Assembly (NCBI RefSeq): GCF_030028105.1
Contig: NC_092374.1
Span: 176,724,057-176,788,056 of the forward strand
Length of the DNA: 64,000 nucleotides
Source of the DNA: Mobula birostris
Taxonomy: Eukaryota
Direction: 5' to 3'
Positions 6,137 through 47,959 of this stretch are shown one piece after another. The position numbers and the translations under genes were made by a program. Positions within the stretch are counted from its first letter, which is position 1; each line of letters starts with the position of its first letter. Below the pieces are notes generated by a model that saw nothing but the letters and a program-made list of their open reading frames with translations, was not told the origin of the DNA and made no database searches.

Positions 6137-8265
6137 CAGAGCATATAAAAAGTATTCACACCTCTTGGAAGTTTTCTTGTTTTATAGCATTGAATCACAA
6201 TGGATTTACTTACGCTTTTTTCACACTGATCAACAGAAAAGACACTTTCCTGTGAACGTGAAACAAATTTCAACAAATTGGTCTAAATGTATTGCAATTA
6301 TTAAACATTAAATAATTGATTGCATAATTACTCACCCTTTTCAAGTCAGTATTTGGTAGATGCACCTTTGGCACCAATTGCAGTTTTGATTCTGTGTGGA
6401 TAGGTCTCTATCAGCTTTGCACATCTGGACACTGCAATTTTTCCTCGCCCTTCTTAATAAAACTACTCAAGCTCTGTCAGATTGCATGGAGATCGTGAGA
6501 GAACAGCCACTTCAAGTCCAGCCACGAATTTTCAATTGGATTGAGGTCTGCACTGATTTGGCCACTCCAGGACATTGACTTTGTTGTTTCTAAGCCATTC
6601 CTGTGTAGCTTTGACTCTATGCTTTGGATTATTGTTTTGCTGGAAAACAAATCTTTTCCCAAGTCGCAGTTCTCTTGCAGACTGCAATAGGTTTTCCTCC
6701 AGGATTGCCCTGTATTTTCCTGCATTCATTTTACCCTCTAACTTCACGTTTTTCAGGGCCTGCTGCAGTGAAATATCCCCACAGCATGACGCAGCCACCA
6801 ACTTCCTTCACAGAAGGGATGCTGTGTTTCTGGTGATGTGCGGTGTTTGCAATGCTAAACATGGTATTTAGTCTGATGGCCAAGAAGCTCAATTTTGCTT
6901 TCATCAAACCATAGAACCTTCTTCTGGCTGACTTCAGAGTATTACACATACCTTCCGGCAAACTCTAGCCAAGGTTTCATGTGAGTTTTTCCCCTCATTA
7001 GTGGCTTTTCCTTTGCCACTCTCCCATAAAGCTGTGACTGGTGAGGTACAGTTGAGGGCAATTGGTGATGTATGCGCAGGCTTTCCCATCTTAGCCACTG
7101 AAGCTTGTAACAACTCCAGAGTTGGCAAAGGTCTTTTGGATGCCTTCCCCACTTTTCTCCCTCTTGCATGTTCACTCAGTTTTTGAGGATGGCTTGTTCT
7201 AGACATATTTACTGTTGTACTATATTCTTTCCATTTCTTGATGATTGACTTAGCTATACTCCAAGTGATTTGGAAATTTTCTTGAATCAAGCTCCTGACT
7301 TCTGCTTTTCAGTATCCTTTCTGTGGAGTTGCTTGGAGTGCTCTTTTGTCTTCATGGTGCAGTGTTTGCCAGGAGACTGACTCTCCAGTAGTTGAGCATA
7401 GAACATAGAAATTTACAGCACATAACAGGCCCTTTGGCCCATAATGTTGTGCCAGCTATGTAACCTAATTTAGAGATTACCTAGAATTTCCCTAGAGCAT
7501 AGCCCTCTATTTTTCTAAGCTCCATATACATATCCAAGAGGCTGTGAATAGAATCTATTGTATCCACTTCCACTGCCGAGATTGCATTCCACGCACTGCT
7601 ACTCTCTGTGTGAAAAACTCACCCTGACGTCCCCTCAATACCCATTTCCAAACACTTTAAAACTATGTCCCCTCGTGTTAGTCATTTCAACCCTAGGAAA
7701 AAGCCTTTGGCTAGCCACATGATCAATGCCCCTCATCATCTTGTACACCTTTATCAATCACCTTTCATCCTCCGTCACTACAAGGAGAAAGGGCCAAGTA
7801 CACTCAATCTACTGGCATAAGCTATGCCCTCCAATCCAGGCAACATCCTTGTAAACCTCCTCTGCACTCTTTCTACAGTATCCACACCCTTCCAGTAGTG
7901 AGGTGACAAGAACTGAGCACAGTACTCCAAGTGGAGACCCTCCAGATACAGGTGTATTCTTACTATAATCAATTTAAACACTTTGACTGCACACAACCTG
8001 ATATATAGCTAGGACACCTAATTAATTATGTGACTTCTAAAACCAATTGACTGCACAAGTGATGGTTTGGTGTGTCATATTAAAGGTGGTGAATACTCAG
8101 GCAATTAGTTTGTGTTTTATATTTGTAATTAATTTAGACCACTTTGTATAGATCCATTTTCACTTCGAAGTGAAAGAGCTGTTTTCTATTGATCAGTGTC
8201 AAAAAAAGCAAATTAAATTCTCTGTGATTCAATGTTGTAAAACAGTAAGACATGAAAACTTCCAA
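6137..8265 (-). mobile_element. Tc1/mariner DNA transposon, degenerate, with long inverted repeats and a CR1 insertion
   Basis: Transposase fragments FQQNNNPKH, WSGQISADLNPIENSW (WPSQSPDLNPIE motif) and MLWGYF. Inverted termini GGAAGTTTTC...TGAATCACA and TGTGATTCA...GAAAACTTCC. Confidence 0.88.
7400..7945 (-). mobile_element. CR1 LINE 3' fragment nested in the Tc1 element
   Basis: LEYCAQFLSPHY..VERVQRRFTRMLPG (ORF 7778-7996) and an AGAACATAGAA-type tail near 7400. Confidence 0.85.
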
Positions 8266-8879
8266 GAGAAGAGATTACTGTGCCTTTGATGATTATTTTT
8301 ATGCCTTCAGTGACCACAGGAGCAGTAGCAGAAGATTAGAAGATGGCAAATGTTATTCCTTTGTTCAAGATAGGGAGTCTGGGAATTAGATACCAATAGG
8401 TCTTAATTCAGCAGTAGGCAGATATTTGGATAAAATTCTTGGATACAGGATTTATGAGCTCTGGAGAAGCATATTCTGATTAGCGATAGTCAGCATAGCT
8501 TTCCAGAAGTCAGATAGTAGGCAGAAGTCGTGGTACATATTGGTTCCCACGACATAGGCAGAAATAAGGGAGGAGATCCTGATAAAAGAATAAATGGAGT
8601 TAGGAAGAAAGCTGAGAAGCAGGACCTCAAGAGTAGTATTCTCATCATTGTTGCCTGTATCATGCATCAATGATGACAGGAATAGAATACGGTAGCAGAT
8701 AAATGTGTGACTGAAGAGTTGGAGTGGAGGCAGGGATTCAGATTTCTGGATATCTGGGAGCTCTTCTATTGAATGTCTATGAGATGGTTTTTTAAAGCAT
8801 CTTGTGCTTGCACCTACTCGGGAAAGACCATTGTAGATTGGCTGTTGTGTAATAACCCAGATCTTATTAGGGAGCTTCA

Positions 8880-9830
8880 TGTCAAGGCAATGATCACTTG
8901 TTCTGCTTGCAAGGATAAGTGCCAGGAGGAAGATCAGTGGGGAGGGACGAAGGTTTGTTGCCCCCATAATCTTATTTTTACTATGGATGTCCAGTCCCTA
9001 TGCACCTCCATACTGCACCAGGAACACCTCAAAACTCTGTCTCTTTCTGGACATCAGACACAACCAATTTGCCTCCACCATCACTCTGCTCCATCTAGCG
9101 TCCCTCCTAGTACTTATCCTTGTAAGCAGAACAAGTGCTACACCTGCCCCAACAACTCCTCTCTCACTACCATTCAGGGCCCCAGACAGTCCTTCCAGGT
9201 GAGATGACACTTCACCTGCGAGCCTGTTGGGATCATATAGTGTGTTCAGTGTTCCTGGGGTGGCCTGCTGTATATCAGTGAGACCCAATGAAGATTGAGA
9301 GCACCTACACTCCATCCACCAGAAGAAGCAGGACTTCTCAGTGCCCATATATTTTCATTTCACTTCCCATTCCAACATGTCAATCCATGGCTTCCCGTAC
9401 TGTCGCGATGAGCCCACACTCAGGTTGGAGGAACAACACGTTATATGCCATTTGGGTAGCCTCCAACCTGATGGTACGAACATCTATTTCCCTCTCTCAC
9501 CTTACCTCCTTGACTGCCCATCACCACCCTCTGGTGCTCCTCCCCACTTTTCTTTCTTCCATGGCTTTCTGTTCTCTCCTATCAGACTCTTCCTTCTCCA
9601 GACCTGCATCTCTTTCACCAATCAACTTCCCAGCTTTTTACTTCATCACTTCCCCTCCCAGTTTCACCTATCAGCTTGTGTTTCTCTCTCCCCTGCCCCC
9701 ACCTTTTACATCTACTCCTCATCTATTTTTTTTCCAGTACTGCTGAAGCATCTTGGCCCACTTATTTTTATTCCATAGATGCTGACTTCCTCCAGCATTA
9801 TGTGTGTGTTCTTTGGATTTCAGCATTTGC
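8880..9830 (+). mobile_element. Penelope-like element (PLE) fragment, GIY-YIG region and pseudo-LTR
   Basis: CKQNKCYTCP..SSLTTIQGPRQSFQVR and CRDEPTLRLEEQH motifs, shared with the other PLE copies in the window. Confidence 0.8.
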
Positions 9831-9849
9831 AGATTTTCTTTTGTTAATG

Positions 9850-11595
9850 ATGCAAGTGAAGTAGTAATTGGGGACAAAGAAATGACAGACAAACCTAATG
9901 AGTACTTTGCATCTGTCTTCACTGTGGAAGACACTAGCAGTACGCCAATGGTCCAGGGTGCAGAAGTGAGTGCCATTGCTGTTACAAAGGAAAAAGTGTG
10001 AGGCAAACTCAATGGTTTTAAGGTGGATAAGTGAACTGAACCAGATGGACTACATCCCAGAGAGCTGCAAGAGGTTGATGAAGAGATAGCAGATGCATTG
10101 GTCATGATCTTTCAAGAATCACTTGATCCTGGTATAGTCCTGGAGGGCTGGAAGATTGCAAATGTCATTCCACTCTTTAAGAATGGAGGAAGGCAAAAGA
10201 AAGATAATTATAGGCCATTTAACCTAACCTCAGTGGTTGGGAAAGTGTTGGAGACTATTACCAAGGATGAGGTTTCAGGGAACTTGGAGACTGATGATAA
10301 AATAAGTCAAAGTCAGCATAATTTCTGTGAAGGGAAACCTTGCCTGACAAATCTGTTAGACTCTTTGAGGAAGTAACAAGCAGATTGGTCAAATGAGATG
10401 CAGTGGATGTCACTTAATTAGAATTTCAGAAGGCACTTGATAAGATGCCATACATGAGGCTGCTTAAGATGATAAAATCCTGTGGCATTGGAGGAAAGTT
10501 ACTGGCATGAATGGCTGACAGACAGGAGGCAGTGAGTGGGAATAAAAGGAGATTTTTCTGGTTGTCTGCTAGTGTTAGTAGAGTTTCTCAGGAACCCATA
10601 TCAGGACTGTTACTTTTCACATTGTTTGTCATTGATTTGGATAATGGAATTGATGTCTGTTTGGCAAAGTCTGCATATGATACAAAGATAGGTGGTGGGG
10701 TAGGTAGCGCTGAGGAAGCAATGCGACTGCAACAGGAATTAGACAAGGTAGAACAGGTAAAAAGGTTGCAGATGGAATATACTGTTGGGAGATGTATGAT
10801 ACTGTATTTTGGTAAAAAGAGCAATAGTGCAGACTATTATCTAAATGGGGAGAATGTTCAAACATCAGAGGTGCAGAGGAACTTGGGAGTCCTCATCCAA
10901 GACTCCCAGAAGGTTAACTTACAGGTTGAGTCTTTGGTAAAGAAGACAAATGTAATGTTGACATTTATTTCAAGGGGAATAGAATATGAAAACAAGGAGA
11001 TAATGCTGAGCCTTAAGACATTGGTCAGGCTGCATTTGGATTCCTGTCAACAGTTTTGGTCCCCATATCTCAGAAAGGATGTGTTGTCATTGGAGAGAGA
11101 CCAAAGGAGGTAAACAAAGATGATGCACGGAATGAACAGGTTAACATTTGAGGAGCATATGGCAGCTTTAGATCTGTACTCACTGGAATTTAGAAGAATG
11201 CATGGGGATCTCATTGCAACCTACCGAATGTTGAAAAGATTAGATAGGATGGATGTAGAGAGGAAATTTCCAATGGTGGGGGCATCTAGAACTAGAGAAC
11301 ACAGCCTCAAATTGATGGGCAATGTTTTGAGCAGAGTTAAGGAGGAAGGTTTCTTAGCCAGAGAGCAGTGAATCTGCAAAAATGCTCTGTCTCCACTGTG
11401 GTAGAGGCCAAGTCCATGGCTATATATTTAAGGCAGAAGTTCATTATTTCCTGATCAGTCGGGGCATCAAAGGATATGGTGAGAAGGCAGGTGTATGGGG
11501 TTGAATAGGATTTGGGATCAGCCACGACGGAATAGTGGAGCAAACTCGATGGGCTAAATGACCTTATTCTGCTCCTATATCTTATTGCCTTATTG
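9850..11595 (+). mobile_element. CR1 LINE ORF2 (RT), degenerate
   Basis: WKIANVIPLFK..NYRP..LTSVVGK; AYDTKIGG (FADD-equivalent); 3' CR1 UTR. Confidence 0.88.
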
Positions 11596-11609
11596 AATTC
11601 ATCGAGGAT

Positions 11610-12690
11610 ACGACAAAGCATTGACGAAAGTAATATAGCAGAAGTCGTGTGTATAGAATGTACTAATACATTGGATAAGGCTGCAGAAAAGTCATTCAGA
11701 AATTCAGGAGGCCTTGGATCCTATAAAACGTGTCTGTGTGGATTCAGAGATGTCTTACCACACCCCTGCTCTTTGTGATTGTTATAATTGACTTAGATGA
11801 AGTGAAAGGTTTGGTTAGCAGATTTGCAGATGACCCAGAGTTTGTTGGAGTTGTGAATAGTAATGCATGTTATAATGGACATAAACAGGATGCAGAGCTG
11901 GGTTCAGAGTTGCAGATGGAGTTCAACCCAGAAAAATGCAAATTGATTCATTTTGGAAATTCAAATTTGGAGGCAAACACAGTTGCAACATGTTTGCCAG
12001 TGTGGAAAAGTGAAGGAAACTTGGAGTCCTTGCCTATTGATCCCTCAAAGTACCCACAAAATTTGATAGGGTAAAAAGGTGTACCGTGCATTGGGATTCA
12101 TCAGTGAGGGGAATAGGTTCAAGAGCCATGAAGTAATTTTGCAGTTCTATAAAACCCTGATTATGAGACCACACTTGGATTTTTCTGTTCATTTCTGGTC
12201 ATCTCATTATACGAAGGATGTGTAAGATTTAGAAAGATTCACCAGGACTCTGCCAGGATTAGAGCACTTGTCTTGCAGGGATAGTTTGAGTGAGCTAGGG
12301 TTTTTCTCTTGGAACAAAGCTGGATGAGAGGCAACTGGTTAGAGGTATACAAGAGGATGATAGAGGTGTACATCGAATGAATATGCAAAGTTTCTTTTTC
12401 CCAGGGTGGAAATGGCTATAAGGGGGCATTATTTTAAGGCAACTGGAGGAATGTACAGGAGGGATGTCAGTGAATTATTTAAAAAAAAAAATGTGAGTAG
12501 CGAGTGCATGGTGGTAGAGGCAGACACATTAGTTATGATTAGAATTTCTTAGGTAGCTACATGGATGATAGAAAATGGACAGCTATGTGGGAGGGATGAG
12601 ATAGATTGATCTTAGAGTAGATTAAAATGTCGGTACAACATTGTGAGTCAAAGGGTTGGGACTGTGGTGTAGGTTTCTTCATTTTATGTT
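11610..12690 (+). mobile_element. CR1 LINE RT fragment, older
   Basis: VSRFADD...QMEFNPEKCKLIHFG (ORF 11730-12074). Confidence 0.8.
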
Positions 12691-13305
12691 CCAGTACATG
12701 ACTGGAAGTGCATTAATCCCTCCTGCCTCTGTCCATTGGCAGTGGGAAGGGAAGATATAAAATGATGTGCTGCATGTGTCCTGATGAGTTGAGTGGGTGG
12801 TGGGGTCAACAGAGCAGACCATAGACTTGCACATGGAATAACCACTGCAAAAGACTGAATGGGGAATGGAATGAAATGAGAGAAAAAAAAAAGTTTAGTG
12901 GTAGAATCCTGTTGAATATGACAGGAAGTGTTGAAAGAGAAGACTGGAGGGGTTGTAGGTGAGTTCCAGGGCGAGCCTATGGTCGCTATGCCAAAGAGGA
13001 GATGCAGTTAGAATGGAATAGCAAAATATAGATATAATGTCATCAGCTGTTCTTTCAGCTACCATCAAGGGAATCCACAGTTCATGAAGGACAACATCCT
13101 TTGCTCTTCATATGGAGTTTACACCCACTTTCTGTCACTGAGTGGGTTTCCTCCAGGTGATCCACCACACATAGCAAACGTATGCCAGATCACATTCTTC
13201 TCACTCATAAGGAAATAGGAAATGAGTGTGTTCAGGTTACAAGTAATAAAGAAACATGACTCAACACATACAATCACAAAACAATGCATTCTGCCCTGAA
13301 CTCAC

Positions 13306-13581
13306 CTTTTCGGGTCAGGTATGTTTTTCCAACTGCATAATAGTCCTTGCATAGTCGCACACAGTCCTTTTCTAACAAGTTCTTGAAATATTTGTTCATT
13401 CTTTCATTTTTATCCCATTTCTTTTTGAAGGGCTGAAATACTGGATCATGTACAATCCACTCCAGTTTGTCTTTATCAAAGCTAAGTATGTATTTTCCAT
13501 CGTAAGCCAACTTCAGTATCCCTATGTTGGGACTATGATCATTCAGCTGACAACCAAACTGCCCTTGTAAGTAGTGATAAC
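13306..13581 (-). CDS. MHC class I heavy chain alpha2-domain exon (non-classical-like)
   Basis: 276-bp open exon, acceptor ttctttcAG|GT TAT CAC and donor AAAAG|GTGAGT, phase 1/1. Encodes GYHYLQGQFGCQL...AYDGKYI...KKKWD...LLEKDCVRLCKDYYAVGKTYLTRK, with the C101/C164 disulfide pair, H93, D119, W147 and Y171 (HLA numbering by manual alignment). Confidence 0.93.
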
Positions 13582-13786
13582 CTGAAAGAAAATTAATCAT
13601 TCATTAACTATTACATCTGGACAATATATGAGCACCTGGGTTAAAACACAAACCTTCCCCCCTGCCAGCCCCATGGAGAATGTTCAACTTCACACAGATA
13701 ATCCTTTCATATTAAGAATGAGAACCAATTTAAGTACCTGATATAAACATTAAACACAAAATAATCTGCAGATGCTGGGGTCAAAG

Positions 13787-13940
13787 CAACACTCACAACA
13801 CGCTGGAGGAACTCAGCAGGTCGGGCAGCATCTGTGGAAACGATCAGGACTGATGAAGGGCTCCGGCCCGAAACATCGACTGATCTTTTCCACGGGTGCT
13901 GCCCGACCTGCTGAGTTCCTCCAGCGTGTTGTGAGTGTTG
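13787..13940. repeat. Near-perfect ~60-bp inverted repeat (PLE-end foldback) enclosing a hammerhead-like core
   Basis: Arms CAACACTCACAACACGCTGGAGGAACTCAGCAGGTCGGGCAGCA... and ...TGCTGCCCGACCTGCTGAGTTCCTCCAGCGTGTTGTGAGTGTTG. Loop is CTGATGAAGGGCTCCGGCCCGAAACATC. Confidence 0.9.
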
Positions 13941-14599
13941 AAATAAACACTGTTACATAGAGTCATGGGAGATAGTGAAAAATAAGCACCAAGGTCAGTC
14001 AGAAATACATGCTGCAATCTTATATCAATGCCAATACAATTTTCTTTAATGACTGAAATATTATTTGTCACTGTTCCCTCTATAAATCAACAAAGATGAT
14101 GCAAGATGAATTGTCAATTCACTCTGAGCTTAACCAGGGTGAAAACTGTGCCAAATATCTCACACAAGACACCTAATTTAACAGGGTCACAGGAAATTAA
14201 ATTGATTCCCTCACGTGCAGCAGTAACAGAATGGAGCAGACAACTTAAAAGTCTTTCTTCTGAGCAGAGGGAGTCAATGCAATCACATGTTCATCAGGTC
14301 ATATAGCACCTAAAAAAGTCCTCCTGCGAAAATGATTCAAGAAATCAAACACGTTCATCTAAACTAGTCTCATGCTTCTTCAAGTTGATGCTGCAAAGAT
14401 ATCATCCCACCGATTTCACTCTTATATACCTACCAACTCTCTACATCAACAGTTTCCATTTAACCTGGCAAAATGGACATCAGAATCAGAAGGCAGAATT
14501 GGCCTCAGGTTATTGGAATGTGAGGCAGCGGCATCATTAATAACTACTACTCCACATCTGTAGTTTACATGCAGACTTATTCACACATGGGGATGTGTT

Positions 14600-17500
14600 T
14601 GAACATAGAACATAGAATAGTACAGCACATTACAGGCCCTTTGGACCACAGAGCTGTGCTGATCCTCAAACCCTTCCTCCCATATAAGCCCCCACCTTAA
14701 ATTCCTCCATATACCTGTCTAGTAGTCTCTTAAACTTCACAGAGTGTATCTGCCTCCAGCACTGACTCAGGCAGTGCATTCCACACACCAACCAATCTCT
14801 GAGTAAAAAAACATTCCTCCACTATCCCCCTTGAACTTCCCACCCCTTACCTTAAAACCAGGTCCTCTTGTATTGAGCAGTGGTGCCCTGCGGAAGAGGT
14901 GCTGGCTATCCACTCTATCTATTACTTTTATTATCTAGTACACCTCTATCATGTCTCCTCTCATCCTCCTTCTCACCAAAGAGTAAAGCCCTAGCTCCCT
15001 TAATCTCTGATCATAATGCATACTGTCCAAACCAGGCAGCATCCTGGAAAATCTCCTCTGTACCCTTTCCAATGCTTCCATATCCTTCCTATAGTGAGGC
15101 GACCAGAACTGCACACAGCACTCCAAGTGTGGCCTAACCAGAGTTTTATAGAACTGCATCATTACTTCTCGACTCTTAAACTCTAACCCTCGACTTAGGA
15201 AAGCTAACACCCCGTAAGCTTTCTTAACTACCCTATCTACCTGTGAGGCAAGTTTCAGGGATCTGTGGACATGTAACCCCAGATCCCCCTGCTCCTCCAC
15301 ACTTCCAAGTATCCTGCCATTTACTTTGTACTCTGCCTTGGAGTTTGTCCTTCCAAAATGTACCACCTCACACTTCTCCGGGTTGAACTCCATCTGCCAC
15401 TTCTCAGCCCACTTCTGCATCCTATTAATGTCTCTCTGCAATCTTCAACAATCCTCTACACCATCTACAACACCTCCAACCTTTGAGTTGTCTGCAAACT
15501 TGCCAACCCACCCTTCTACTCCCACATCCAGGTCGTTAATAAAAATCATGAAAATTAGAGGTCCCAGAACAGATCCTTGTGGAACACCACTAGTCACAAT
15601 CCTCCAGTCTAAATGTACTCCCTCCACCATGACCCTCTGCCTTCTGAAGGCAAGCCTATTCTGAATCCACCTGGCCAAACTTCCCTGGATCCCATGCCTT
15701 CTGACTTTCTCAATAAGTCTACCATGTAGAACCTTGTCAAATGCCTTACTAAAATCCATATAGATCACATCCACTGCACTACCCTCATCTATATGTCTGG
15801 TCACCTCCTCAAAGAACTCTATCAGGCTTGTTAGACACGATCTGCCCTTCACAAAGCTATGCTAACTGTCACTGATCAGTCCATGTTTCCCTAAATGCCC
15901 ATAGATCCTCTCTCTAAGAATCTTTTCCAATAGCTTTCCCATCACAGACATAAGGCTCACTGGTCTATAATTACCCGGACTATCCCTACTACTTTTTTTG
16001 AGCAAGGGGACAACATTCGCCTCCCTCCAATCCTCCAGTACAATTCCCATGGACAACGAGGACATAAAGATCCTAGCCAGAGGCTCAGCAATCTCTTCGC
16101 TCACCTCGTGGAGCAGCCTGGGGAATATTCCTTCAGGCCCCGGGGACTTATTGATCCTAATTTATTTTAACAACTCCAACACCTCCTGTCCCTTAATATC
16201 AACATGCTCCTGAACATTAACCTCACTCATATTGTCCTTACCATCAAGTTCCCTCTCATTGGTGAATACCAAAGAGAAGTATTCATTGAGGACCTCACTC
16301 ACTTCCACAGCCTCCAGGCACATCTTCCCACCTTTATCTCTAATTGGTCCTACCTTCACTCCTGTCATCCTTTTGTTCTTCATATAATTGAAGAATGCCT
16401 TGGGGTTTTCCTTTACCCTACTTGTCAAGGCCTTCTCATGCCCCCTTCTTGCTCTTCTCAGCCCCTTCATAAGCTCCTTTCTTGCTTCCCTATAATTCTC
16501 AATAGAGCCATCTGATCCTTGCTTCCTAAACCTCATGCATGCTGCCTTCTTCCACCTGACTAGATTTTCCACCTCACTTGTCACCCATGATTCCTTCACC
16601 CTACTATTCTTTACCTTCCTCATTGGGACAAATTTATCCCTAACATCCTGCAAGAGATCTCTAAACATCAACCACATAACCATAGTACATTTCCCTGCAA
16701 AAACATCATCCCAATTCACACCTGCCTCATAATTTGCCCTTCCCCAATCAAAAATTTTCCTGTCCTCTCTGATTCTGTGCTTTTCCATGATAATGCTAAA
16801 GGCCAGAGAACAGTAGTCACTGTCCCCCATGCTCACCCACTGACAGATCTGTGACCTGACCCGGTTCATTACCTAGTACTAGATCTAGTATGGCATTTCC
16901 CCTCATTGGCTTGTCCACATACTGTGAGAGGAATCTGTCCTGGACACATTTAACAAACTCTGCCCCATCTAAACCCTTGGAACTAATCAGGTGCCAATCA
17001 ATATTAGGGAAGTTTAAGTCACCCATGATAACAACCCTGTTATTTTTGCACAGTTCCAAAATCTACCTCCCAATCTGCTCCTCTGTATCTCTGCTGCTAC
17101 CAGGGGGCCTATAGAATACCCCCAATAGAGTAACTGATCCCTTCCTGTTCCTGACTTCTACCCATACTGACTCAAAAGAGGATCCTGCTACATTACCCAT
17201 CATTTCTGTAGCTGTAATCATATTCCTGACCAGTAATGCCACCCACCTCCCCTTTCTCCCCCCTCTCTATCCATTTTAAAGCACTGAAATCCAGGAATAT
17301 TGAGAATCCATTCCTGCCCTGGTGCCAGCCAAATCTCTGTAATGACCATTACATCATAATTCCATGTATGTATCCAAGCTCTCAGTTCATCACCTTTGTT
17401 CCTGATGCTTCTTGCATTGAGATACACACACTTCAGCCCTTCTACCTTACTACCTTTACACCATTTATTCTGCTTCTCTTTCCTCAAAGCCTCTCTATAG

Positions 17501-17930
17501 GTTAGATCTGGCTTTACCCCATGCACTTCTTTCACTGCTCTATCGCTCCAGGTCCCATCCCCCTTGCAAATTAGTTTAAACCCTCCCGACCTATGCTAGC
17601 AAACTTACCTACAAGGATATTGCTCCCCCTTGAGTTCAGGTGCAACCCATCCAATCTGTACAGGTTCCACCTTCCCCAGAAGAGATCCCAATGATCCAAA
17701 AAATCTAAAACCCTGCTCCCTGCACCTACTCCTCAGCCACGCATTCAACTGCCATCTCCTCCAAATATAACCATCACCATCACATAGCACTGGCAGCAAT
17801 CCTGAGAAAGCCACCCTTGAGGTCCTTTTCTTCAGCCTTCTGCCTGGTTCCCGAAACTCATACTTCAGGACCTCATCCCTATTCCTGCCTATGTCGTTGG
17901 TACCAACATGTATCATAACCTTTCGTTGTA
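14600..17930 (-). mobile_element. CR1 LINE, near full ORF2 (APE endonuclease + RT) plus ORF1 esterase fragment; frameshifted
   Basis: LNARSIRNK..(EN), [38 protein letters not shown] (SGNH esterase), and a GAACATAGAACATAGAA tail. Confidence 0.92.
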
Positions 17931-18199
17931 TTGGCTCTCTAAAGCATAAATTACCTGACTTTCATACACATGAAGTTAGCACAGTTTTAACAAAATGATT
18001 GGGTAACGAATTTAATTTTACACTGCTGCCCAAACTAAACAAAAAGAGAATTCCTCAAGGATAACAGTCCTTGTTTTATATGATGTAGAATGAGGCCATT
18101 CAAATCACCAGATCCAAGCTATCTGATTGAGTAATTCCATTCCTCCAATAATGTGCCTTTTAACCTACCAAACTACACTAGAGGAAATTTACTGACCTG

Positions 18200-19130
18200 G
18201 AGCAACATATGGAAAATGCTGGAGGAATGCAGATGGTTAGGCAGCATCTATGATAATGGATCAACAGTCAACATAGCCGGCCAAGATCCTTCATTCAGAC
18301 TGGAAAGGAAAGGGGAAGATGCCAGAATAAGATTTATGGTTGGGAAAGAGAACAAGCTGGATGGGGACACGTGAAGCCAAGTGGATTGGGGAGGGGGTTG
18401 AAGTATGAAGCTGGAAAGGTGATGGGTGGAAAAGGCAAAGGACTGGAGAAGACGGAACTTAATAGGAGAGGAGAGTGGACCATGAGTGAAAGGGAAGGAA
18501 GAAGGGAACCGGGGGAGATGGTAGATAGGTATGGAGAACAGATAACAGGCCAGTGTGTGGAATTGAAGAGGAGGGAAGGGAGGGTGAAAGAAATTACTGG
18601 AACTTAAAGAAATCAATGCTCATGGCATCATGTTTGAAGCTGCCCAGCCAGAATATGATGTGCTGCTCCTCCAAACTGAGAATGGCCTCATTGTCACAGA
18701 CGAGGTGGCCAAAGATTGCCATAATGGAATGGGAATGAAATAAGAATTAAAATGCTTTGCCACCTCCCTCATGCCTCCACATTAATCTCTTTGCTGGCAC
18801 TAATCCCTGCAAGGGCAGAAGTGTTAAACATGCCTATTCACATCCTCTCTCACCTCCATTCCAGGCACCAAACAGTCCTTCCAGGAGAGGCAGCACTTCA
18901 CCTGTGTAACTTTTGGGGTTATCTATTGTATCAGATGCTCCCAATGAGTCCTGCTCTACACTGGTGAGACTCCAAATAGATGGGGACTGCTTTCTGAAGC
19001 ACCTCTGTTCCATATGCAAAATGTGTGATTTCCTGGTCCATAACTATTTTCATTTCTATATCCATTCCCATATATCAGTCCATGACTTTCATTTCTGCCA
19101 TGATGAGGCCACTCTCAGGTTGTAGGAGCA
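18200..19130 (-). mobile_element. Penelope-like element fragment, old
   Basis: Degenerate GIY-YIG region (18750-19130) and a pLTR-type end near 18200-18300. Confidence 0.7.
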
Positions 19131-19377
19131 ACACCTCATATTCCCTATATATACTTGCAGTTTAAGGTGGCACTGTAGGGTAATTTAATCAGTGAAACCT
19201 GCATGATTCACAACCACCAACATTGAGTTGGCGTTCAATTTAGAAGGATTGTCTGACATGATAACCCAATTACATGAAGTGTTTTACTGCGCAGTATGTT
19301 CTGTGTTTGGAAGACAATAATGAGTTGTTACAGCTTCCTTCAAATCTGCTGTTTTATTTCTGAAAACCTACACTGTT

Positions 19378-20100
19378 GACCCCCAACACACATAAAAGTT
19401 GCTGGTGAACGCAGCAGGCCAGGCAGCATCTCTCGGAAGAGGTGCAGTCGACGTTTCAGGCCGAAACCCTTCGTCAGGACTAACTGAAGGAGGAGTGAGT
19501 AAGGGATTTGAAAGTTGGAGGGGGACGGGGAGATCCAAAATGATAGGAGAAGACAGGAGGGGGAGGGATGGAGCCAAATGCTGGACAGGTGATAGGCAAA
19601 AGGGATACGAGAGGATCATGGGACAGGAGGTCCGGGAAGAAAGACAAGGGGGGGGGGGGAGACCCAGAGGATGGGCAAGGGGTATATACAGAGGGACAGG
19701 GGGAGAAAAAGGAGAGTGAGAGAAAGAATGTGTGTATAAAAATAAATAACAGATGGGGTACGAGGGGGAGGTGGGGCCTTAGCGGAAGTTAGAGAAGTCG
19801 ATGTTCACGCCATCAGGTTGGAGGCTACCCAGATGGAATATAAGGTGTTGTTCCTCCAACCTGAGTGTGGCTTCATCTTTACAGTAGAGGAGGCCGTGGA
19901 TAGACATGTCAGAATGGGAATGGGATGTGGAATTAAAATGTGTGGCCACTGGGAGATCCTGCTTTCTCTGGCGGACAGAGCGTAGGTGTTCAGCAAAGCG
20001 GTCTCCCAGTCTGCGTCGGGTCTCGCCAATATATAAAAGGCCACATCGGGAGCACCGGACGCAGTATATCACCCCAGCCGACTCACAGGTGAAGTGTTGA
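19378..20100 (-). mobile_element. Penelope-like element 3' fragment (GIY-YIG + pLTR), young
   Basis: GVIYCVRCSRCGLLYIGETRRRLGDRFAEH (ORF 19779-20138), a GIY-YIG nuclease. Confidence 0.9.
19446..19481 (-). ncRNA. Minimal type I hammerhead ribozyme motif (PLE pLTR)
   Basis: Minus strand reads AGTC-CTGACGA-AGGGTTTCGGCCT-GAAA-CGTC-GACT: CUGANGA and GAAA cores, stem I AGTC/GACT, palindromic ACGT stem III, GUC cleavage triplet. Confidence 0.8.
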
Positions 20101-22383
20101 CCCCGATGCTGTCGGACTATTCCAGAGTAATTGAACACACATCAGCTAATGCATTTCTTTGAAGTTGCTGGAGTTTGGGAACGAAATGCTGCTGCTTAGT
20201 TTGTGCACGCTGAAGCCCGATCTCTGCATGCGACACCAAATATTGCTACATAGTAGCATCACTCAGTAGTTCCACGTCTGAGAGTAGTGTGCTTACTTGA
20301 ATACCAGCCTGAAAGCTCAGCTTTTACAAACTTTGGGCTTATTGAACTCGAACATACCAAACAGATGCCTGGGAGATGCTCAGCCTTCAGAACTAATGGA
20401 CTACATGCAGTCTCTTCTGGGAAATCACCATCCTTGTTTAATTTTTAAAGAACCCTTTATGCAGCCAATGTTTGATCAAGTTCACATGGCCCCCACTAAT
20501 GCATGCACGGAGGACTATAGGAAGCTTGCTAAAATGCCTGATAGTCCAAACACATCCAGGCAAAGTTGCATAATTCCTCTCCTTTTCCCTGCCTCAATAA
20601 GCCTGGTCAGCAGGGCCTCCAGCACACGCACACCCCTGGCTGTGAAGCAGAAAACTCTGGGTCTATGCTTTTGCCATGCTTGCTTTGGTATGAACTCGAG
20701 TATGTGCCAACTGCCTTGCAGCTTCAACAGTGCCAGTGCACCGAGACTTCAGAGGTCTGTGAACACTGTGCGTTCCAGCTGCCAGTGTCATCTACTGTTC
20801 ATTACAGACACCCTTTCAGGGCAATGGTTTAATGTGACACAGGTGCTCAAGTGAGTGTGCTACCAGCATCAACAATTGATCAGAAGGCAAAGAGTGATGA
20901 AACCTCACTGGAGGCTACCAAAGACAGCTGGATTCAGAATTTCACTTAAAGCCATGTGTTTTTATACATTTACTCTGTGACGTTTGCTTTGCTGTCCTCA
21001 GCGCTGAGGCTGTACCCTGCTCTGAGCTTCATGTCTGTGAGCATTGTGACAATTTGCCCCACTGAGTGATGATTTGAGACTGAGGCTATGAGCCTACTCC
21101 AGGCATCACACCTATGGGCTAAATTTAATTTTGAATGCTGTTGATTGCTTTATTGTTTGCATTTGTGTGTTTTCTTTCTCTATCTGCACATTAGCTATTG
21201 GTCCTTTTCCAAAATTGCGTTCTTTCTGGTTTCCTGATCTGTGACTGCCTGTAAACAGACAAATGTCAAGGTTATTTAATTTATACATTTTTTGATAATA
21301 AATATGCTTTCAATTTTGACATCTTATGGTCTTTTCCCCCCATGGTCCACTTTTCTGTCTTTTCAGATTCCTTCTTCTCCAGCCCTGTACCTTTTCCATC
21401 TATCATCTCCCAGCTTCTTACTGCACTTCACTTCCACTCTCCAACCCACCTGTCTTCATCTACAACCCTCTAAGCTTGAACTCCTTGCCCGCCTCCCACC
21501 TTCTTATTCTGGCATCTTCCCTCTCTAGTCCTGATGACGGGCCTCAGCCCAAAAGGTCAACTGTTTATTCATTTCCATAAAAGCTTCTTGGCCTGCTGAG
21601 TTCCTCCAGCATTTTGAGAGTGCTGCTGTAGATTTCCAGCATCTATAGAATCACATATTTATAACCTACTGACCTGCACGCTTTTGGGGACTTGTAGGAA
21701 AACAAGGCAGCAACGTGGTCACATGAAGAAAATGCAGACTCCACATAGGTAGCACTAGAGGGCAGCATTGAGCTTATGTAACTGGAGCTATAAACTAATA
21801 GCTGTAAAAACTATCAAACATAAGTCTGCTGTAGATTAAATGTCCACCGTGAATAAAGCATATAAAAATGGTATATTTAATAATGATTGATATTGTTCTC
21901 TCAATTACTCAATGAACCTGATAATAATTCAATGATTATCTTATTGTTAAATAAAATTTATACTACTAGATCTGAATGTTGATAGAAGTTGCGACCAACC
22001 AATAATAATTTGCCGCAGATATGAATCTTTCTCAATCTGTCCAGTTAAATACTACTTCAGTAAAGATTTGCTGAATACATAACTAAATATCACATGATAA
22101 AAAGCAACATTATGAGAAATAATCAGTTATACAACACCACTGTCAGTCAATGTCAGCTGTGGCAGAATGAATTTCACAACTTACAGTGGGAGAAACTGGT
22201 AAATCAATTACCCAAGTTTTGTTATGTCTGACCTTCAAAATACTTAGTGCACCATAGCTTGGGCATCCAACTCTGCAATTATTTCATGCCATTTCAGATT
22301 TCCAGCATCTGTGTTTTTTATTCACATGTTCATTCACATTGACCTAGAACCCCCTCCACATTCAGTCAACTGGATAGACTAAC

Positions 22384-22644
22384 CTGTACTTTCGTTATGC
22401 TGCTGCAGCCATTCTATAGCTTGCCCCTTTATGATTCCATGGATACTATGTTCAGTCATTGTATCTTTTGCCCAGTAAGACTTGTCAAATGCAGCCGCCA
22501 TCCATTTTTGTCTTGGGACTGTCATTTCCATAGTTCTGTCATAATACTGGATCTCACAACCATCCAGGGCACCGACGACACTATACTCAGGTAGATCAGC
22601 ATTTCCATGATTCAGAGTGTAGTAATAGATCAGTGAGTGAGACA
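22384..22644 (-). CDS. MHC class I heavy chain alpha1-domain exon (non-classical-like)
   Basis: 261-bp open exon, acceptor ttttgttccctctAG|TG TCT CAC and donor AGTACAG|GTTAGT, phase 1/1. Encodes SHSLIYYYT...VVGALDG...YYD...VPRQKW...SYW...HNESTG, with H3, Y7, D29, R48, Y59, W60 and the N86 sequon. Confidence 0.93.
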
Positions 22645-23249
22645 CTAGAGGGAACAAAATAATAGAAATATGTTGGTGAGTGATGACTGGAAATAGCTTA
22701 AAATAATATATTCAGAGAATAAGATATTCCACACACATCCCAAACTCAGCTGGGTTGGTTAATTGCCCATGGTAACCTGTCCATAGTGTGGAACTGAGTG
22801 ATAAAATCTGGGAATATGGAGAGAAAATGAGTTATTGTAGGATACGTGAAATAGTCAGCACGGATTTCCATGCCAATCTGCTCTGATTAAGTTACATCAG
22901 ATTATGCCTAAGTAGGCAAAGTGAGACCTATCATCTTTATTCTACAATATTGATTCAATCAATTACAGTATTTCATTTTATTTAGCAATACAGCACGGGG
23001 CAGGCCCTTCCGGCCATGCTGTCCCAACAACACCTGACAAACATAATTAACCCTAAACTAATCACAGGATGACTTACAATAACCAATTAACTTACCCAAT
23101 ATATCTTTAGACTCTGGGAGGAAACAAGAACACTCAGGAAAACCCATACATTCCAAAGCGAGGATGTACAGACTTCTTATAGCACATACTAGAATTGAAC
23201 TCCAGAACACCAGGTTGTAATACCGTTGAGCTAACACCCTCATTAATGG

Positions 23250-24340
23250 GGAGAGTGTTATCTGCCACCAACACTCTCCTCCACCTAGCAGAACATGTTT
23301 TTAAATCAAGACAAACTTTTTTTTTATTCTTCTCATTTTATACAAAAAATACCTGAAGCCATGGGCACCCACATGAGACCCAGCTATGCATCCCTTTTTA
23401 ATAGCAACTTGGTACAGTGCTTATTGCTGGCTCTACTCCCTCTCTCTTTCTCCAGTACATCGATAACTGCATTGGTACTATATCTGTGTGGAGCTGTTTT
23501 GTCAATTTTTCTACTAACCCACTCAGTACTCAAATTCACATAGAGCATTTCTGATACATTTCCCCTCTATCCAGATCATCTCAGAAGACAAAATACCACC
23601 TAACATTTACAAACGTACTATAAACACATCAAATCCATCATCTAGCTAGACTACACCTTCTCCCACCCTGTCTGGTGTAGTGATACCATGGCTTTCTTGG
23701 TTTCTCTATCCCTAACACATCTGCTCGAAGAGATGGTTTTCCGTTCCAGAAGTGTGGCTTCCAACGGTCTGACATTAATGACTCCTCGGTGACATCTCCT
23801 CCATTTTCCCACACTTCTTGTCCTGCACCACTTCCTCACAGGCAAGCAGATTTCCTTTGATCCTCATCTTTCATCACATCAGCCCATGCATCTAGCATAT
23901 CATTCTTCATCATATCCATCCATTGCTACACAACCACACCACCTGTCAAATTTCCGCCTTCTCACATCCCTGTGCTTTTCACAGGGATCACCTTCTGCAT
24001 GGCCACCAACCTCATTCACCCTTCCCCACCCATTCTTCCATATTCCAGCAGTATTTTCCTTACAGCAGTAAGAAATACAACTCTTGTCCCTACAACACCT
24101 CCTTTACCGTCATCCACTGACCTAAACTGGCCTTCCTGATGAGGCAGAGAACCTCCTCCGATGTAATCTGCTGTATATTGGCGACACCAGGCACAGACTG
24201 GGCAACTACCTCACTGACCATCTGTGCTCCGTCCACAGTGGCCATCTCAAGCTCCCATTCACAAGCCATTTCATTTCTCCTTGCATTCCCACTGGGATGC
24301 ATTTATCCTTGGCCTCCTGCACTGCCAGCATGGGGCTAAG
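23250..24340 (+). mobile_element. Penelope-like element, old degenerate RT/EN fragment
   Basis: AMGTHMRPSYASLF resembles the PLE RT motif AMGTRMGPSYACLF, followed by degenerate GIY-YIG-like sequence. Confidence 0.7.
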
Positions 24341-24359
24341 GTCAAGCTACAAGATTGGA

Positions 24360-25370
24360 AGTTCATAAAATACCATAAGACATAGGAGCAGAATAAGACC
24401 ATTTGTCCCATTGGTTCTTCTCCACCATTTCATCATAGCTGACCCATTTCCCTCCCAGTCCCAATCTCCTGTTTTCTCATTATACCCACCCATACTCTGA
24501 CTAAACCAAAGCTTATCAACCTCTGCCATAAATATGCCCAATAACTTGGTCTGCACAAACGCTTATGGCAATGAATTCCACAGATTCATCAGTTCCAGAA
24601 GAATTTAGCTGATCTTCCTTTGCACCCGCTCCAATATCAGCCCATGCTTTCTTAAATAAAAGGTCCAAACCTGCTCACAATGCTCCACCTGAGGCCTCAG
24701 AGGGTGTTATAAAGCTTCAATATTACATTCTTACTTTTATCTTCTCAAAATAAATGCTAACATCACATTTGCCATCCTCACTAACGACTCAACCTGGAAA
24801 TTATCCTTTGGTAATCCCTACATGAGGACCCAAAATCCTTTTTTTTAATTTTTGCTCCATTTAGAAAATAGTCAATGCTTTTATTTCTTCTCCTAATTCC
24901 CAAAACTGTATTGTATTTGCCATTTCTTTGCTCATTTTCCTAATCTGTCTAAATCTGTCTGTATCCTCTATTCTTCCCCCAAACAACCAGCATCTCCACC
25001 AGTGTTTATATCATCAGCAAATCGGGTCTCAAAACCATCAATTCTATCATCCAAACCATTGAGGTATCATATAGAAAGCAGTCTCAAAACAGACTAGACA
25101 CTGGCAGCCAAGATAAACTGCTTTCCATTACTCCCACTTTTTGCCTGCTGCCAAGCAGGCAATGCTCTTTCTCTGCTAGCATCTTTCCTATAATACCATG
25201 GATTTGTTAAACAGCCTCATGTGTGGCACCTTGTCAAAGGCCTGCTGAAAAATCCAAGTACCCTTAAGGGAACTGTATTGACTTCAGTCCACCAAGTACC
25301 CCAAAACCACATCCTTAACAATCAAATTCAACACATTCCCATCCACTGACGTCAGACTAACTGAACTATA
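24360..25370 (-). mobile_element. CR1 LINE fragments, old
   Basis: CR1-type 3' end (ACCATAAGACATAGGAGCAGAA) and degenerate RT sequence. Confidence 0.65.
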
Positions 25371-25389
25371 ATGTTGTTTCTCCTAACAC

Positions 25390-27110
25390 CACACACAAAA
25401 TGCTGGTAAACGCAGCAGTCCAGTCAGCATCTATAGGGAGAAGTACAAATGACATTTTGGGCTGGGACCCTTCGTCAGGACTAAATGAAAGAAGAGATAG
25501 TCAGAGATTTGAAAGTGGGAGAGGGAGGGGAGATCCGAAATGATAGGAGAAGACAGGAGGGGAGGGGTGGATCTAACAGCTGGAAAGTTGATGGGCAAAA
25601 GGGATATCAGGCTGGAGAAGAGAGAGGATCATGGACAGGAAGCCTGGGGAGAAAGAAAAGGGGGGAGATGAGCCCGGAGGGTGGAGAGCAGGCAAGGAAT
25701 TATAGTGAGAGGGACAGAGGTAGAAAAAAAGTGAGGGGGGGAAATTAAAAATATATTTTAAATATTAAATAAATAAATAAATAAATAAATAGAGAAATGA
25801 CATAAATAAGGGGAGTGGTGTGAAGGGGAGGAGGGGCATTAACTGAAGTTAGAGAAGTCAATGTTCATGCCATCAAGTTGGAGGCTACACAGTCGGAATA
25901 TAAGGTGTTGTTCCTCCAACCTGAGTGTGGCTTCTTCTTTACAGTAGAGGAGGCCATGGATAGATATATCAGAATGGGAATGGGACGTGGAATTAAAATG
26001 TGTGGCCACTGAGACATCCTGCCTTCTCTGGCACATAAACCATACGTGTTCAGCGAAACGGTCTCCCAGCCTGCATCACGTCTCGCCAGTATATAGAAGG
26101 CCGCGCCGGGAGCACCAGACGCAGTATATCAGCCCGGCAGACTCACAGGTGAAGTGTCACCTCACCTGGAAGGACTGTCTGGGGCCCTGAATGGTGATGA
26201 GGGAGGAAGTGTAAGGGCCTGTGTAGCACTTGTTCTACTTAAGGATAAATGCCGGGAGGGAGATTGGTGAGAAGGGATGGGGGGAACGAATGGACAAGGG
26301 AATCGCACAGGGAGTGATCACTGCAGAAAGCAGAAAAGTAGGGGAGGGATAGATGTGCTTGGTGGTGGGATCCTGTTGGAGGTGGCGGAAGTCACGGAGA
26401 ATTATATGTTGGACCCGGAGGCTGGTGGGATGGCAGGTTAGGACAAGGGGAACCTTATTCCTAGTGGGGTAGCAGGAGGATGGAGTGAGAGCAGATGTGC
26501 GTGAAATAGGAGAGATGCGTTTGAGAGCAGAGTTGATGATGGAGGAAGGGAAGCCCCTTTCTTTAAAAAAAAAGGAGACATCTCCTTCGTCCTGGAATGA
26601 AAAGCCTCATCTGGAGAGCAGATGCGGCGGAGATGGAGGAATTGCAAGAAGGTGATGGCATTTTTGCAAGAGACAGGGTGGAAAGAGGGAAAGTCCAGGT
26701 AGCTGTGAGAGTCCGTATGCTTATAGTACACATCAGTAGATAAGCTGTCTCCAGAGATAGAGACAGAAAGATCTAGAAAGGGGAGGGAGGTGTCTGTCTC
26801 ACTCTACCCCTTGCCCATTCTCTGGGTTTTTCCTCCCCCCTCCCCCTTTTCCTTCTCCCTGGGCCTCCTGTCCCATGATCCTCTCATATCCCTTTTGCCA
26901 ATCACCTGTCCAGCTCTTGGCTCCACCCCTCCCCCTCCTGTCATCTCCTATCATTTTGGATCTCCCCCTCCGCCTCCCACTTTCAAATCTCTTACTAGCT
27001 CTTGTTTCTGTTAGTTCCGACGAAGGGCCTTGGCCCGAAACTTCGACTGTACCTCTTCCTAGAGATGCTGCCTGGCCTGCTGCGTTCACCAGCAACTTTG
27101 ATGTGTGTAT
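25390..27110 (-). mobile_element. Penelope-like element (RT thumb + GIY-YIG) with an inverted pLTR at its truncated 5' end (26790-27110)
   Basis: YYKHTDSHSYLDF.S.HP..CKNAI.F.QFL.LRRICS (PLE RT C-terminus). The opposite-strand copy of the same terminal repeat abuts the truncation. Confidence 0.85.
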
Positions 27111-28439
27111 AGAAAAAAGATGATGTTTCAGCCAGAAAGCCTTCAGCAGGACTGGAGAGAAAAAGGTTTAAAAAGTGGGGGAGAGGAGACAGAAACACAT
27201 GGTGATAGATAACACCTGAAGGGGGAGGGATGAAGTAAAGAGCTGGGAAGTAGATTAGTGAAAAAACAGAAGCTTTTCCAACATCTGCAGATTTTCTCTT
27301 GTTTTTACTATAGGAAGGTAGTGGAACAGACAGAAACTCTCAAGGGAGGATACTTTTGACAATTTCAAAGAATCAAAGTATATTTATTATCTAAGTATGT
27401 ATACAGAATACAGCTCTGAGATTCATCCTCCCACAGCAGCCACAAAACAAAGAAACACCATGGAATTTGTTCAAAGAAAACATGATACATCCAATGAACG
27501 AATAAAAGAACTGTTTATTCAAATTGCAAAAAGTGATCGAGCAACACCTGGAATTCTCAACATCAAACTAGGAGTATTCAACTTATTAGGATAAGTCCAG
27601 TTCTGTGTTGCCAGCTGACTGCAGGGCACAGAGCCCGTCTTCACTGAGGTGCCCCCATCTGCTCTGAATGCCATGATCAAACTACCCAAAAACAGCAAAA
27701 GAGTGTAACCAGGATCCAGAAATACATGCAACATGAACCTCAAAGTCCCCCAAGATGATTCCACGAGCCTTGCTGACCAATCCTTGCATCGTGGATCCCA
27801 AGGTTCCTGTGCTTTCCTCTGACAGCAGCTAGCCAAAGGGAGGGGAAGACTGCTCAAATACAGGCAGGCAGTGTCAGACACCAACGTGCACTCTGTGCTT
27901 GTCTTTGTCAACTCCAACTTTAAGATCTGTACTTTACAGTGGTTCTGAGGGTTTTGAGGAGAAACGGCCATTATGAAGAAGAAAGGGGAGGGTGAAACAA
28001 GATCTGGAAAGAGTTAGGTGGATCTGGGTGATGGGCAGGTAGAGGTAGGTGGGGTAGGAAAGTATGAGGTAGTGACAGGCTGGAAAGTGATGTGCAAACA
28101 ACAGCAAGCTGCAAATTATGAATTCTGATAAAGAAGTTGATCAGTGGCGCAAGATAAAGGAAAGATGTTAGATGGGAACAGGTTAGAAAGGAGAAAGGAT
28201 CTGGGTGACAGACAAGCAGTGAGGTAATTTGGAAGGAATAGTGTTGAGAAGACCTAGGTCAAGTAGAACGGGAGAGAATAGATCACAGGATAAAGTTTGC
28301 TGGGATCTGGAAAATTCCCTGTTTCGTAACTACATAGGATTGAGTAGGACTACACCCAATCGGTGAAGTAGATTAATTAGAAAGGATGAATAAAAATAAG
28401 ACAGGCGCATACGAAGTACTGTGTGAGTGAGCCAGCGTT

Positions 28440-29230
28440 GGAGTGGATTTGACTTAGCAAGCTTAGGCGAGGTCAGTCTTAGGCCTCTATTTTTTCATTC
28501 CATCACTGCTAGGGCACAGCTAGTGCAATGAGAATGACTCGAGGGAAGTGTTTTGTTCTGTGGATGAGATGTGCGAATTCTGGAAAACCTCCAGCCTGCC
28601 AGATAAACACATGTGCACCAGGCGCACCAAGCCACAACTCCTCACAGAAAGTGTTAAGGAACCAGAGGTGCAGCTTGGTGAACTTTGGCTCATACGGGAG
28701 ACTGATGAAGTGATAAATGGGACCTAATGAGAGGTAGTCACCTCTAGCTTGAAGGAGGCACGTAATTGCGTGACTATCAGGAGGAGGAAGGGGAATGGGC
28801 AGCCAGTGTGGAGTACCTCTGTGCTGTTTCCCTCAATATTAAGTATATCACTTTGGATAAATTTCAGAAGGATGACCTACAAGGGGGAAAGTGCAGTAAT
28901 TGCATCTGTAGCATTTACCATGGGCACTGGTAAAGAGTGAAGAGTGGTGATAGGAGATTCCATAGTCAGAGGAACAGAGATGAGATTCTGTGGGAGCGAC
29001 AGAGACACCTAGATGGCATATTGCCTCCAAACTGTCAGGGACAGGGATGTCTCAGCTCGGGTCCTGGCATTCTGAAAGAATTGGGTGGGGGTGGGGGGGA
29101 GCAGCCAGAGGTCTTAGTACATATTCGCACTAATTGCATGGGTAGGAAAGGTGAGGAGGTCCTAAAGAGAGACTTTATTTTAGGTAAATTATTGAAAAAC
29201 AGGACCTCCAAGATAGTAATCTCTGAACTG
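28440..29230 (+). mobile_element. CR1 LINE 5' part / ORF1 (zinc-finger and SGNH esterase) fragment
   Basis: GTGGTGATAGGAGATTCCATAGTCAGAGG (VVIGDSIVRG) and VLVHIRTN (VHIGTND-like). Ends abruptly at retroviral gag sequence. Confidence 0.75.
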
Positions 29231-33385: not shown

Positions 33386-33493
33386 GATAAAGAATCAAAA
33401 GCAACATTTTGCTTTTGGTTTTCTGCAGTTCAATGATATTGCAGAGAAATTGCAATTCAATAGCTCAGCGTTGTCCTTGGGTCAGTTTCTTAC

Positions 33494-47770: not shown

Positions 47771-47959
47771 TACATTGCACACAAAAAACATGACACAACC
47801 CCTGAAGTTATTCTCGTTGCTCCAACTACACACCCTCAATGTAGAATGAAGAATCTTAGCGGATATGTACATCACCAAGCCTGTCCTCACACAAGCCCAA
47901 TGAGCTAAAATCTCCCCACTCTAACATTAGTCCACTCCATCTGTCCCCACCTTCCTTTT

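Follow-up and report, generated by a model that had tools for sequence, protein, structure and literature searches.

A 64,000-nucleotide stretch of the giant manta ray genome (Mobula birostris; RefSeq assembly GCF_030028105.1, contig NC_092374.1, positions 176,724,057 to 176,788,056), referred to here as the window, carries on its minus strand two exons that encode the alpha1 and alpha2 domains of a class I heavy chain of the major histocompatibility complex (MHC). We conclude with high confidence that, as exons 2 and 3, they belong to the apparently single-copy UGA orthologue of this ray. UGA is an MHC-linked class I lineage of the nonclassical type, found in sharks and rays, and a crystal structure is available for one of its shark members (PDB 9CH4). 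The manta gene is a further member of this known lineage and no new kind of molecule. The parts of the gene in the window, in window coordinates and in the order of the gene, are as follows.

53069..53018, minus strand: coding part of exon 1, with the ATG and a signal peptide of 17 residues; the exon end is in phase 1 (A/GTaagt)
52744..52688, minus strand: optional mini-exon, 57 nt, with AG/GT borders
22645..53017, minus strand: intron 1, repeat-rich and 30.4 kb long in the canonical isoform, as derived from the exon coordinates
22644..22384, minus strand: alpha1 exon, 261 nt, 87 codons, open, phase 1 at both ends
13582..22383, minus strand: intron 2, 8,802 nt
13581..13306, minus strand: alpha2 exon, 276 nt, 92 codons, open, phase 1 at both ends, with the C101-C164 disulfide pair
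1..13305, minus strand: first 13.3 kb of intron 3, the total length of which is greater

The initial annotation of the window had described both domain exons as open with canonical phase-1 junctions, and the AG/GT borders and phases were confirmed (ctctAG/TG TCT CAC ... ACA G/GTtagt for alpha1 and tttcAG/GT TAT CAC ... AAA G/GTgagt for alpha2, with slashes at the borders). Each exon alone was recognised by the Pfam MHC_I profile above its cut-off of 28.3 bits, with a score of 30.7 bits (E 2.8e-07, profile positions 2-88) for alpha1 and of 48.7 bits (E 8.6e-13, profile positions 93-178) for alpha2. When the RefSeq proteins were compared with the window by tblastn, exon 1 was identical over residues 1-17, and its joining to alpha1 creates the split codon A+TG for Met, in agreement with the 334-amino-acid isoform X3. 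The mini-exon, which matched residues 19-36 of the manta protein P0165 at 100%, would supply the 19 residues that the RefSeq isoforms X1 and X2 carry between the signal peptide and alpha1, and is present neither in isoform X3 nor in the model of Mobula hypostoma.

The full protein was matched in the window by four pieces, namely the signal-peptide exon, the mini-exon, alpha1 and alpha2, and no match was found there past residue 215. A motif scan, a looser immunoglobulin-pattern scan and the full-protein tblastn search did not find an alpha3 exon in the 64-kb window. Because the gene extends over 70,039 bp of a 210,067,429-bp record of GCA_030028105.1, the exons for alpha3, the transmembrane region and the tail are placed before position 1, and the 3' end of the gene should, by arithmetic from this span, be located about 17 kb before that position. 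The heavy-chain layout is complete, with the leader, alpha1 and alpha2 in the window, whereas alpha3 (a C1-set domain, E 9e-17) together with the transmembrane helix and tail was seen only in the RefSeq protein that matches it at 100%.

Both exons were 100% identical to RefSeq proteins of M. birostris annotated as "MR1-like" (XP_072113429/432/433), alpha1 matching XP_072113432.1 and alpha2 the same protein cluster. This cluster comprises the isoforms XP_072113429/431 (353 amino acids), XP_072113432 (352 amino acids) and XP_072113433.1 (334 amino acids), together with a 334-amino-acid orthologue from M. hypostoma. Three strong matches, all of them ray or shark class I heavy chains, were obtained when the full library was searched by HMMER with alpha2, and the RefSeq protein of M. 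birostris was reached by a word-index search with the best of these. RefSeq already contains manta UGA, with an automatically assigned name that misleads, and we correct the label from "MR1-like" to UGA.

The assignment to UGA was reached by sequence, fold and tree alike, in contrast to the view of the initial annotation that the lineage could not be assigned from sequence alone. The best PDB sequence match of both exons was chain A of 9CH4 (E 2.6e-37 for alpha1 and 5.4e-32 for alpha2), an entry entitled "Crystal structure of shark nonclassical MHC class I, UGA" and released on 2026-03-18, and the runners-up were at 1e-11 for alpha1 (nurse shark class I, 6LUP) and 5e-14 for alpha2 (MR1). An AlphaFold2 model of the 334-amino-acid isoform, built on a 44-sequence alignment with a mean predicted local distance difference test score (pLDDT) of 87.8, also had 9CH4 as its top structural match (Z 30.1, root mean square deviation (rmsd) 1.8 A over 268 residues, 59% identity), followed by chicken and duck class I at Z of about 27 (best 27.1) and, at rank 36, by chicken CD1-1 with Z 25.7. 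In the tree and the groove comparison, 9CH4 was represented by the zebra shark protein P0159, which is a near-copy of it (E 6.7e-170).

In a 73-row maximum-likelihood tree with support from the Shimodaira-Hasegawa-like approximate likelihood ratio test (SH-aLRT), in which a sawshark protein (P0202) served as the classical-signature member and there was no named UAA reference, the manta protein was placed with P0159 in an 18-row clade of sharks and rays (support 99). Within this clade, the rays (100), Mobula with the stingrays (myliobatiforms; 100) and the two Mobula species (99) were recovered, and the branching broadly tracks the species tree. The sister clade of UGA (support 100; joint 98) is a second shark-and-ray lineage that includes M. 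birostris P0185, and the next neighbour of the two is a chimaera group with weak support (85). MR1, class I of lungfish and reptiles and other elasmobranch class I were placed elsewhere, P0202 and the remaining elasmobranch class I being separated by the root from UGA and its sister. The initial annotation had named clustering with classical class I as the outcome that would argue against a nonclassical gene; the manta gene was found outside the classical-signature sequences. Only one protein cluster of M. birostris falls inside the UGA clade, and the 210,067,429-bp record that carries its gene also carries the gene of the sister lineage.

In the UGA clade, the sawfish Pristis pectinata has three paralogues (P0153, P0158, P0161) on one scaffold and the red stingray Hemitrygon akajei has two (P0154, P0171). 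In the skate Leucoraja erinacea, a RefSeq isoform (P0152) joins the UGA alpha1/alpha2 region to a seven-transmembrane receptor domain (PF00001), which is probably a read-through or an annotation artefact.

To characterise transcripts, four runs were mapped on positions 12800-14100; the runs are small and transcriptome-sized, come from two organisms in two studies, and are presumed to be RNA. Contigs of both organisms covered 13306-13584, with zero depth in the adjacent intron, and the overhang at 13582-13584 is the CAG common to the end of alpha1 and the alpha2 acceptor. In run X1, a 661-nt contig without mismatches extended by 288 and 94 nt into sequence absent from the flanks, and in run X3 a 1089-nt contig with a depth of 313 extended by 365 and 445 nt beyond alpha2. 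Alpha1 was found in the same runs as alpha2 (share 1.00 in X1 and 0.96 in X2). Contig ends at the borders of alpha2 are the signature of spliced mRNA and, because the contigs end at these borders and continue into sequence that is not in the flanks, the UGA gene is considered to be spliced and transcribed.

The same data were informative on variation. Alpha2 was identical in two samples and the reference (0 mismatches, in few individuals), whereas the contigs of the second organism differed from the reference at 13357, 13452 and 13525, resulting in R>G, V>A and I>V, with four mismatches in all, one of which was unplaced. These three changes are exactly the alpha2 differences of the M. hypostoma protein, and none is in the list of groove positions. 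In M. hypostoma, the orthologue is intact, with 95% identity to the manta protein; between the two species, 5 of 178 alpha1/alpha2 residues differ and none of the 45 groove positions does. As only three to four alpha2 substitutions separate the Mobula forms, a comparison for selection at this range has no power. The RefSeq model, the spliced transcript contigs and the shark and ray orthologues with their conserved groove bear out the earlier proposal of a nonclassical, functional and conserved class I gene.

The groove of this protein was examined in HLA-A2 numbering, which is anchored on landmark residues (the N86 glycosylation site, C101-C164, W133 and W147). At positions 7, 59, 84, 143, 146, 147, 159 and 171, the manta protein reads YYQFKWLY, where the sawshark class I protein P0202 reads YYRTKWYY and lungfish class I YYRTKWYF, and it has L at 167 and I at 123. 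Realignment left unchanged the earlier calls of the residues that are kept (Y7, Y59, K146, W147, Y171) and lost (Q84, F143, L159, L167, I123), as well as those of the groove-facing residues I70, I73, I74, W81, L95, F99, L114, L116, M152, Y155 and F156. The description of the groove as mostly hydrophobic was true as far as it goes, 31 of the 45 positions being so, but it is not distinctive, because the other elasmobranch class I lineages have 28-32; it is the residue pattern that sets this groove apart. The hydrophobic-residue count was rejected as a discriminator for this overlap (31-33 of 45 in UGA). A non-peptide ligand is argued for by the identity of the changed residues and not by the number of hydrophobic ones.

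Many groove positions are conserved across the lineage. All 18 UGA proteins have L5, Y9, F99, L114, W133, W147, F156, L159 and L160, and 17 of the 18 have W81, M152, Y155, L167, K146 and Y59; position 143 is F in 11 of the 18 and L, M or I in six. W81 and F143 are present also in the shark orthologue of 9CH4. Manta UGA agrees with its zebra shark counterpart at 33 of the 45 positions of the groove, as against 113 of 178 residues of alpha1/alpha2 overall. The remodelled pattern of terminus residues is shared throughout UGA and is not limited to the manta.

The tail of the RefSeq manta protein has the sequence YENI, which conforms to the YxxPhi motif, five residues after the basic stop-transfer stretch. 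Of the 21 proteins and isoforms listed for the UGA lineage, 13 have a YxxPhi motif (YENI, YESI, YQTI or YNxV/I), and none of the 12 tails of the sister lineage has one. Motifs of this type route CD1b, CD1c and CD1d through endosomes. In Pristis pectinata and Hemitrygon akajei, which have several UGA copies, the YxxPhi tail is kept in only one copy each.

With regard to function, a review reports, citing a personal communication, that crystallography and mass spectrometry suggest the binding of lipids similar to CD1d ligands by UFA and UGA (PMC12562908), and an unpublished CD1-like lineage, UFA, was mentioned in the class Ib cluster (Verissimo et al, 2023; PMC10751288). The suggestion of the initial annotation that the molecule may bind a hydrophobic or non-peptide ligand agrees with this lipid binding reported for the UGA lineage. 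Identity, exon structure, lineage membership, transcripts and groove conservation are established for the manta gene; beyond these, the following mechanism may be proposed. The manta UGA heavy chain would pair with beta2-microglobulin; its groove, which keeps Y7, Y59, K146, W147 and Y171 but has Q84, F143, L159 and L167, and which may be lined by the conserved aromatic and aliphatic residues F99, L114, L116, W81, M152, Y155 and F156, would hold a lipid or another hydrophobic ligand and not a peptide fixed at both ends. The membrane-proximal YENI motif could route UGA through endosomes, as in CD1b-d, and the ligand might then be displayed to an innate-like T or natural killer (NK)-type receptor. 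We lean, by a small measure, towards the view that manta UGA presents a lipid or another hydrophobic ligand by such an endosomal route. That the locus as a whole is best explained by a manta UGA gene that is spliced and transcribed, with hydrophobic-ligand presentation as its proposed role, appears probable.

Several points weigh against this interpretation. The RNA nature of the sequencing runs is a guess, and alpha3, the transmembrane region and the tail are known from the RefSeq protein only and not from the DNA. The three alpha2 differences listed between the Mobula forms are all nonsynonymous, giving no sign of purifying selection at short range. The lipid claim for UGA stands on the personal communication in one review, and literature searches found no primary paper on 9CH4, PDB 8GM8, UGA or UFA or on CD1-like molecules of elasmobranchs. 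In the groove itself, the manta protein differs from the shark stand-in P0159 at 12 of 45 positions, its count of hydrophobic residues is no higher than those of the other elasmobranch lineages, and 5 of the 8 peptide-terminus residues are retained, which would be compatible with a peptide or lipopeptide ligand.

These points have to be considered together with other explanations of the locus. With such a ligand, UGA would be a nonclassical class I molecule presenting a narrow range of peptides or lipopeptides, much as HLA-E/Qa-1 or chicken YF1*7.1 do, and not free lipids. It would account for the retention of Y7, Y59, K146, W147 and Y171, and in its fold the model comes closer to avian and fish class I molecules that bind peptides (Z 26-27) than to chicken CD1-1; structures of chicken YF1*7.1 with N-acylated amino acids or peptides were also among the top structural matches. 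The C-terminal anchors, however, are lost (Q at 84 and F at 143) together with Y159 and W167, and this throughout the lineage, and the sole published statement on UGA is one of lipid binding (PMC12562908). We consider this explanation improbable. It is less probable still that UGA, with its groove closed or filled, binds no ligand and serves as a class I-like receptor or ligand of the kind known from FcRn, HFE or MIC; W81 and F143 would then plug the F-pocket end, as the initial annotation had proposed. The bulky residues at these two positions are conserved, as described above, and HFE and ZAG were among the alpha2 sequence matches, but the AlphaFold2 model keeps a normal two-helix platform with the above rmsd to 9CH4, the UGA crystal contained bound lipids according to the review (PMC12562908), and the conservation of the groove floor exceeds the expectation for an unused cavity.

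That the two exons are what survives of a decaying fragment or pseudogene can be regarded as effectively excluded. It would be in line with the lack of an alpha3, transmembrane or tail exon in the window, including 13 kb downstream of alpha2, with the huge introns full of dead repeats and with the fact that each of the three alpha2 changes relative to the other Mobula form is nonsynonymous. The initial annotation had connected a pseudogene with an absence of transcripts and of a downstream alpha3 exon; transcripts are present, and alpha3, outside the window, is present and intact in the RefSeq model along with the transmembrane region and the tail. The 70-kb span of the gene accounts for the exons missing from the window, the 1089-nt contig extends on either side of alpha2, and the M. 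hypostoma orthologue is intact, with the same residue at 45 of 45 groove positions.

Further features of the window include a putative promoter module, read by eye, and repeats in intron 2.

53150..53215, minus strand: putative promoter module, with an X1/X2-like element, CCTAGAAGTTGATGACG, and a Y-box, CTGATTGG, about 20 nt later
about 14935-17916, on the gene's strand: fragmented long interspersed nuclear element (LINE), with endonuclease and reverse transcriptase scattered over several frames
19779-20138, on the gene's strand: GIY-YIG (Penelope-type) fragment in intron 2

The two elements upstream of exon 1, CCTAGAAGTTGATGACG and CTGATTGG, resemble in sequence the X1/X2 and Y boxes of MHC promoters. 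At 53088-53120 on the minus strand, a second ATG about 50 nt upstream of the annotated start is followed by nine codons and then by a consensus-like donor, GTGAGT, and could be a short upstream frame or else belong to an alternative first exon. Parts of the LINE were recognised as RVT_1 (E 1.1e-13) at 15445-15852 and, weakly, as an endonuclease at 17218-17535. The LINE and GIY-YIG remnants are broken, whereas the exons are intact, and the contrast to which the initial annotation had pointed is, accordingly, real. Just upstream of alpha2, at 13750-13940 in intron 2, thousands of contigs from all four runs aligned at 90-95% identity, with a summed depth of up to about 360,000; this element looks like a very abundant, transcribed interspersed repeat resembling a short interspersed nuclear element (SINE).

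This study adds to the knowledge of UGA the exon map of a ray orthologue, evidence for its transcription, groove residues fixed throughout the lineage and a conserved motif for endosomal sorting. UGA and UFA are the candidates for CD1-like lipid presentation in the oldest living jawed vertebrates, which touches the question of whether the presentation of lipids goes back as far as that of peptides. Classical elasmobranch class I (UAA; nurse shark 6LUP), at about 32% identity, has in common with manta UGA the fold, the exon phases, the disulfide between C101 and C164 and the glycosylation site at N86. Assignment to classical class Ia was rejected, as the manta protein keeps 5 of the 8 terminus residues and YYRTKWYY is reduced to YYQFKWLY. 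The variation of manta UGA was low, as seen in two samples and the reference and in two Mobula species, which may be a further difference from classical class I.

MR1 molecules were the best PDB matches of alpha2 other than UGA (E about 5e-14). Identity with MR1 was rejected, in that the Schiff-base lysine of marsupial MR1, K43, aligns to Thr in both manta and zebra shark UGA and MR1 groups with tetrapod sequences in the tree, far from UGA. With CD1, the likeness consists of the proposed hydrophobic ligand, an architecture of the beta2-microglobulin type and a tyrosine-based sorting motif near the membrane, and the manta tail presumably resembles that of human CD1b. Membership of CD1 by sequence was rejected with scores of 19.7 and 17.2 bits for the Pfam profile MHC_I_3 (PF16497), the cut-off of which is 35, and no CD1 chain was among the best 60 PDB sequence matches shown for either exon. 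Because K43 is not matched and the CD1-type profile stays below its cut-off, UGA is neither MR1 nor CD1 by sequence; CD1 is an analogue of UGA, and the term "CD1-like" can only refer to function.

The sister class Ib lineage (manta P0185, skate P0017), which has no solved structure and has 9CH4 as its best PDB match (E 2.9e-62), is about 40% identical to UGA in alpha1/alpha2 and shares with it L159, L160, Y155, F156, M152, G97 and Q84, but has H59, C99, R146 and W167 and a long Q-rich tail without YxxPhi. As a speculation that we hold to be rather unlikely, UGA and this lineage could be old tandem neighbours that share out their tasks much as the CD1 isoforms do, with ray UGA having shifted to a different class of ligand. 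If so, UGA with its YxxPhi motif would sample endosomal lipids and the motif-less sister lineage would be loaded elsewhere; the difference of ray from shark UGA at about a quarter of the groove positions would belong to this reading.

The closest known system is shark UGA (9CH4), which belongs to the same lineage by sequence, fold and tree and has the same length and domain layout. The ectodomains are 59% identical, and the proteins share the anchor pattern at 143, 146, 147, 159, 167 and 171 and the floor residues F99, L114, W81, M152, Y155 and F156. They differ in that the manta gene is spread over 70 kb and in groove residues, for example, 7 (Y in manta and F in zebra shark), 63 (D and C), 70 (I and F), 84 (Q and K), 116 (L and F) and 118 (Y and F). 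The ray tail is also longer, with YENI followed by eight residues, whereas the shark tails end at YNxV/I. The crystallised 9CH4 chain is without the tail, and the shark UGA orthologues (P0159, P0162 and others) have the YxxPhi motif there in common with the manta protein.

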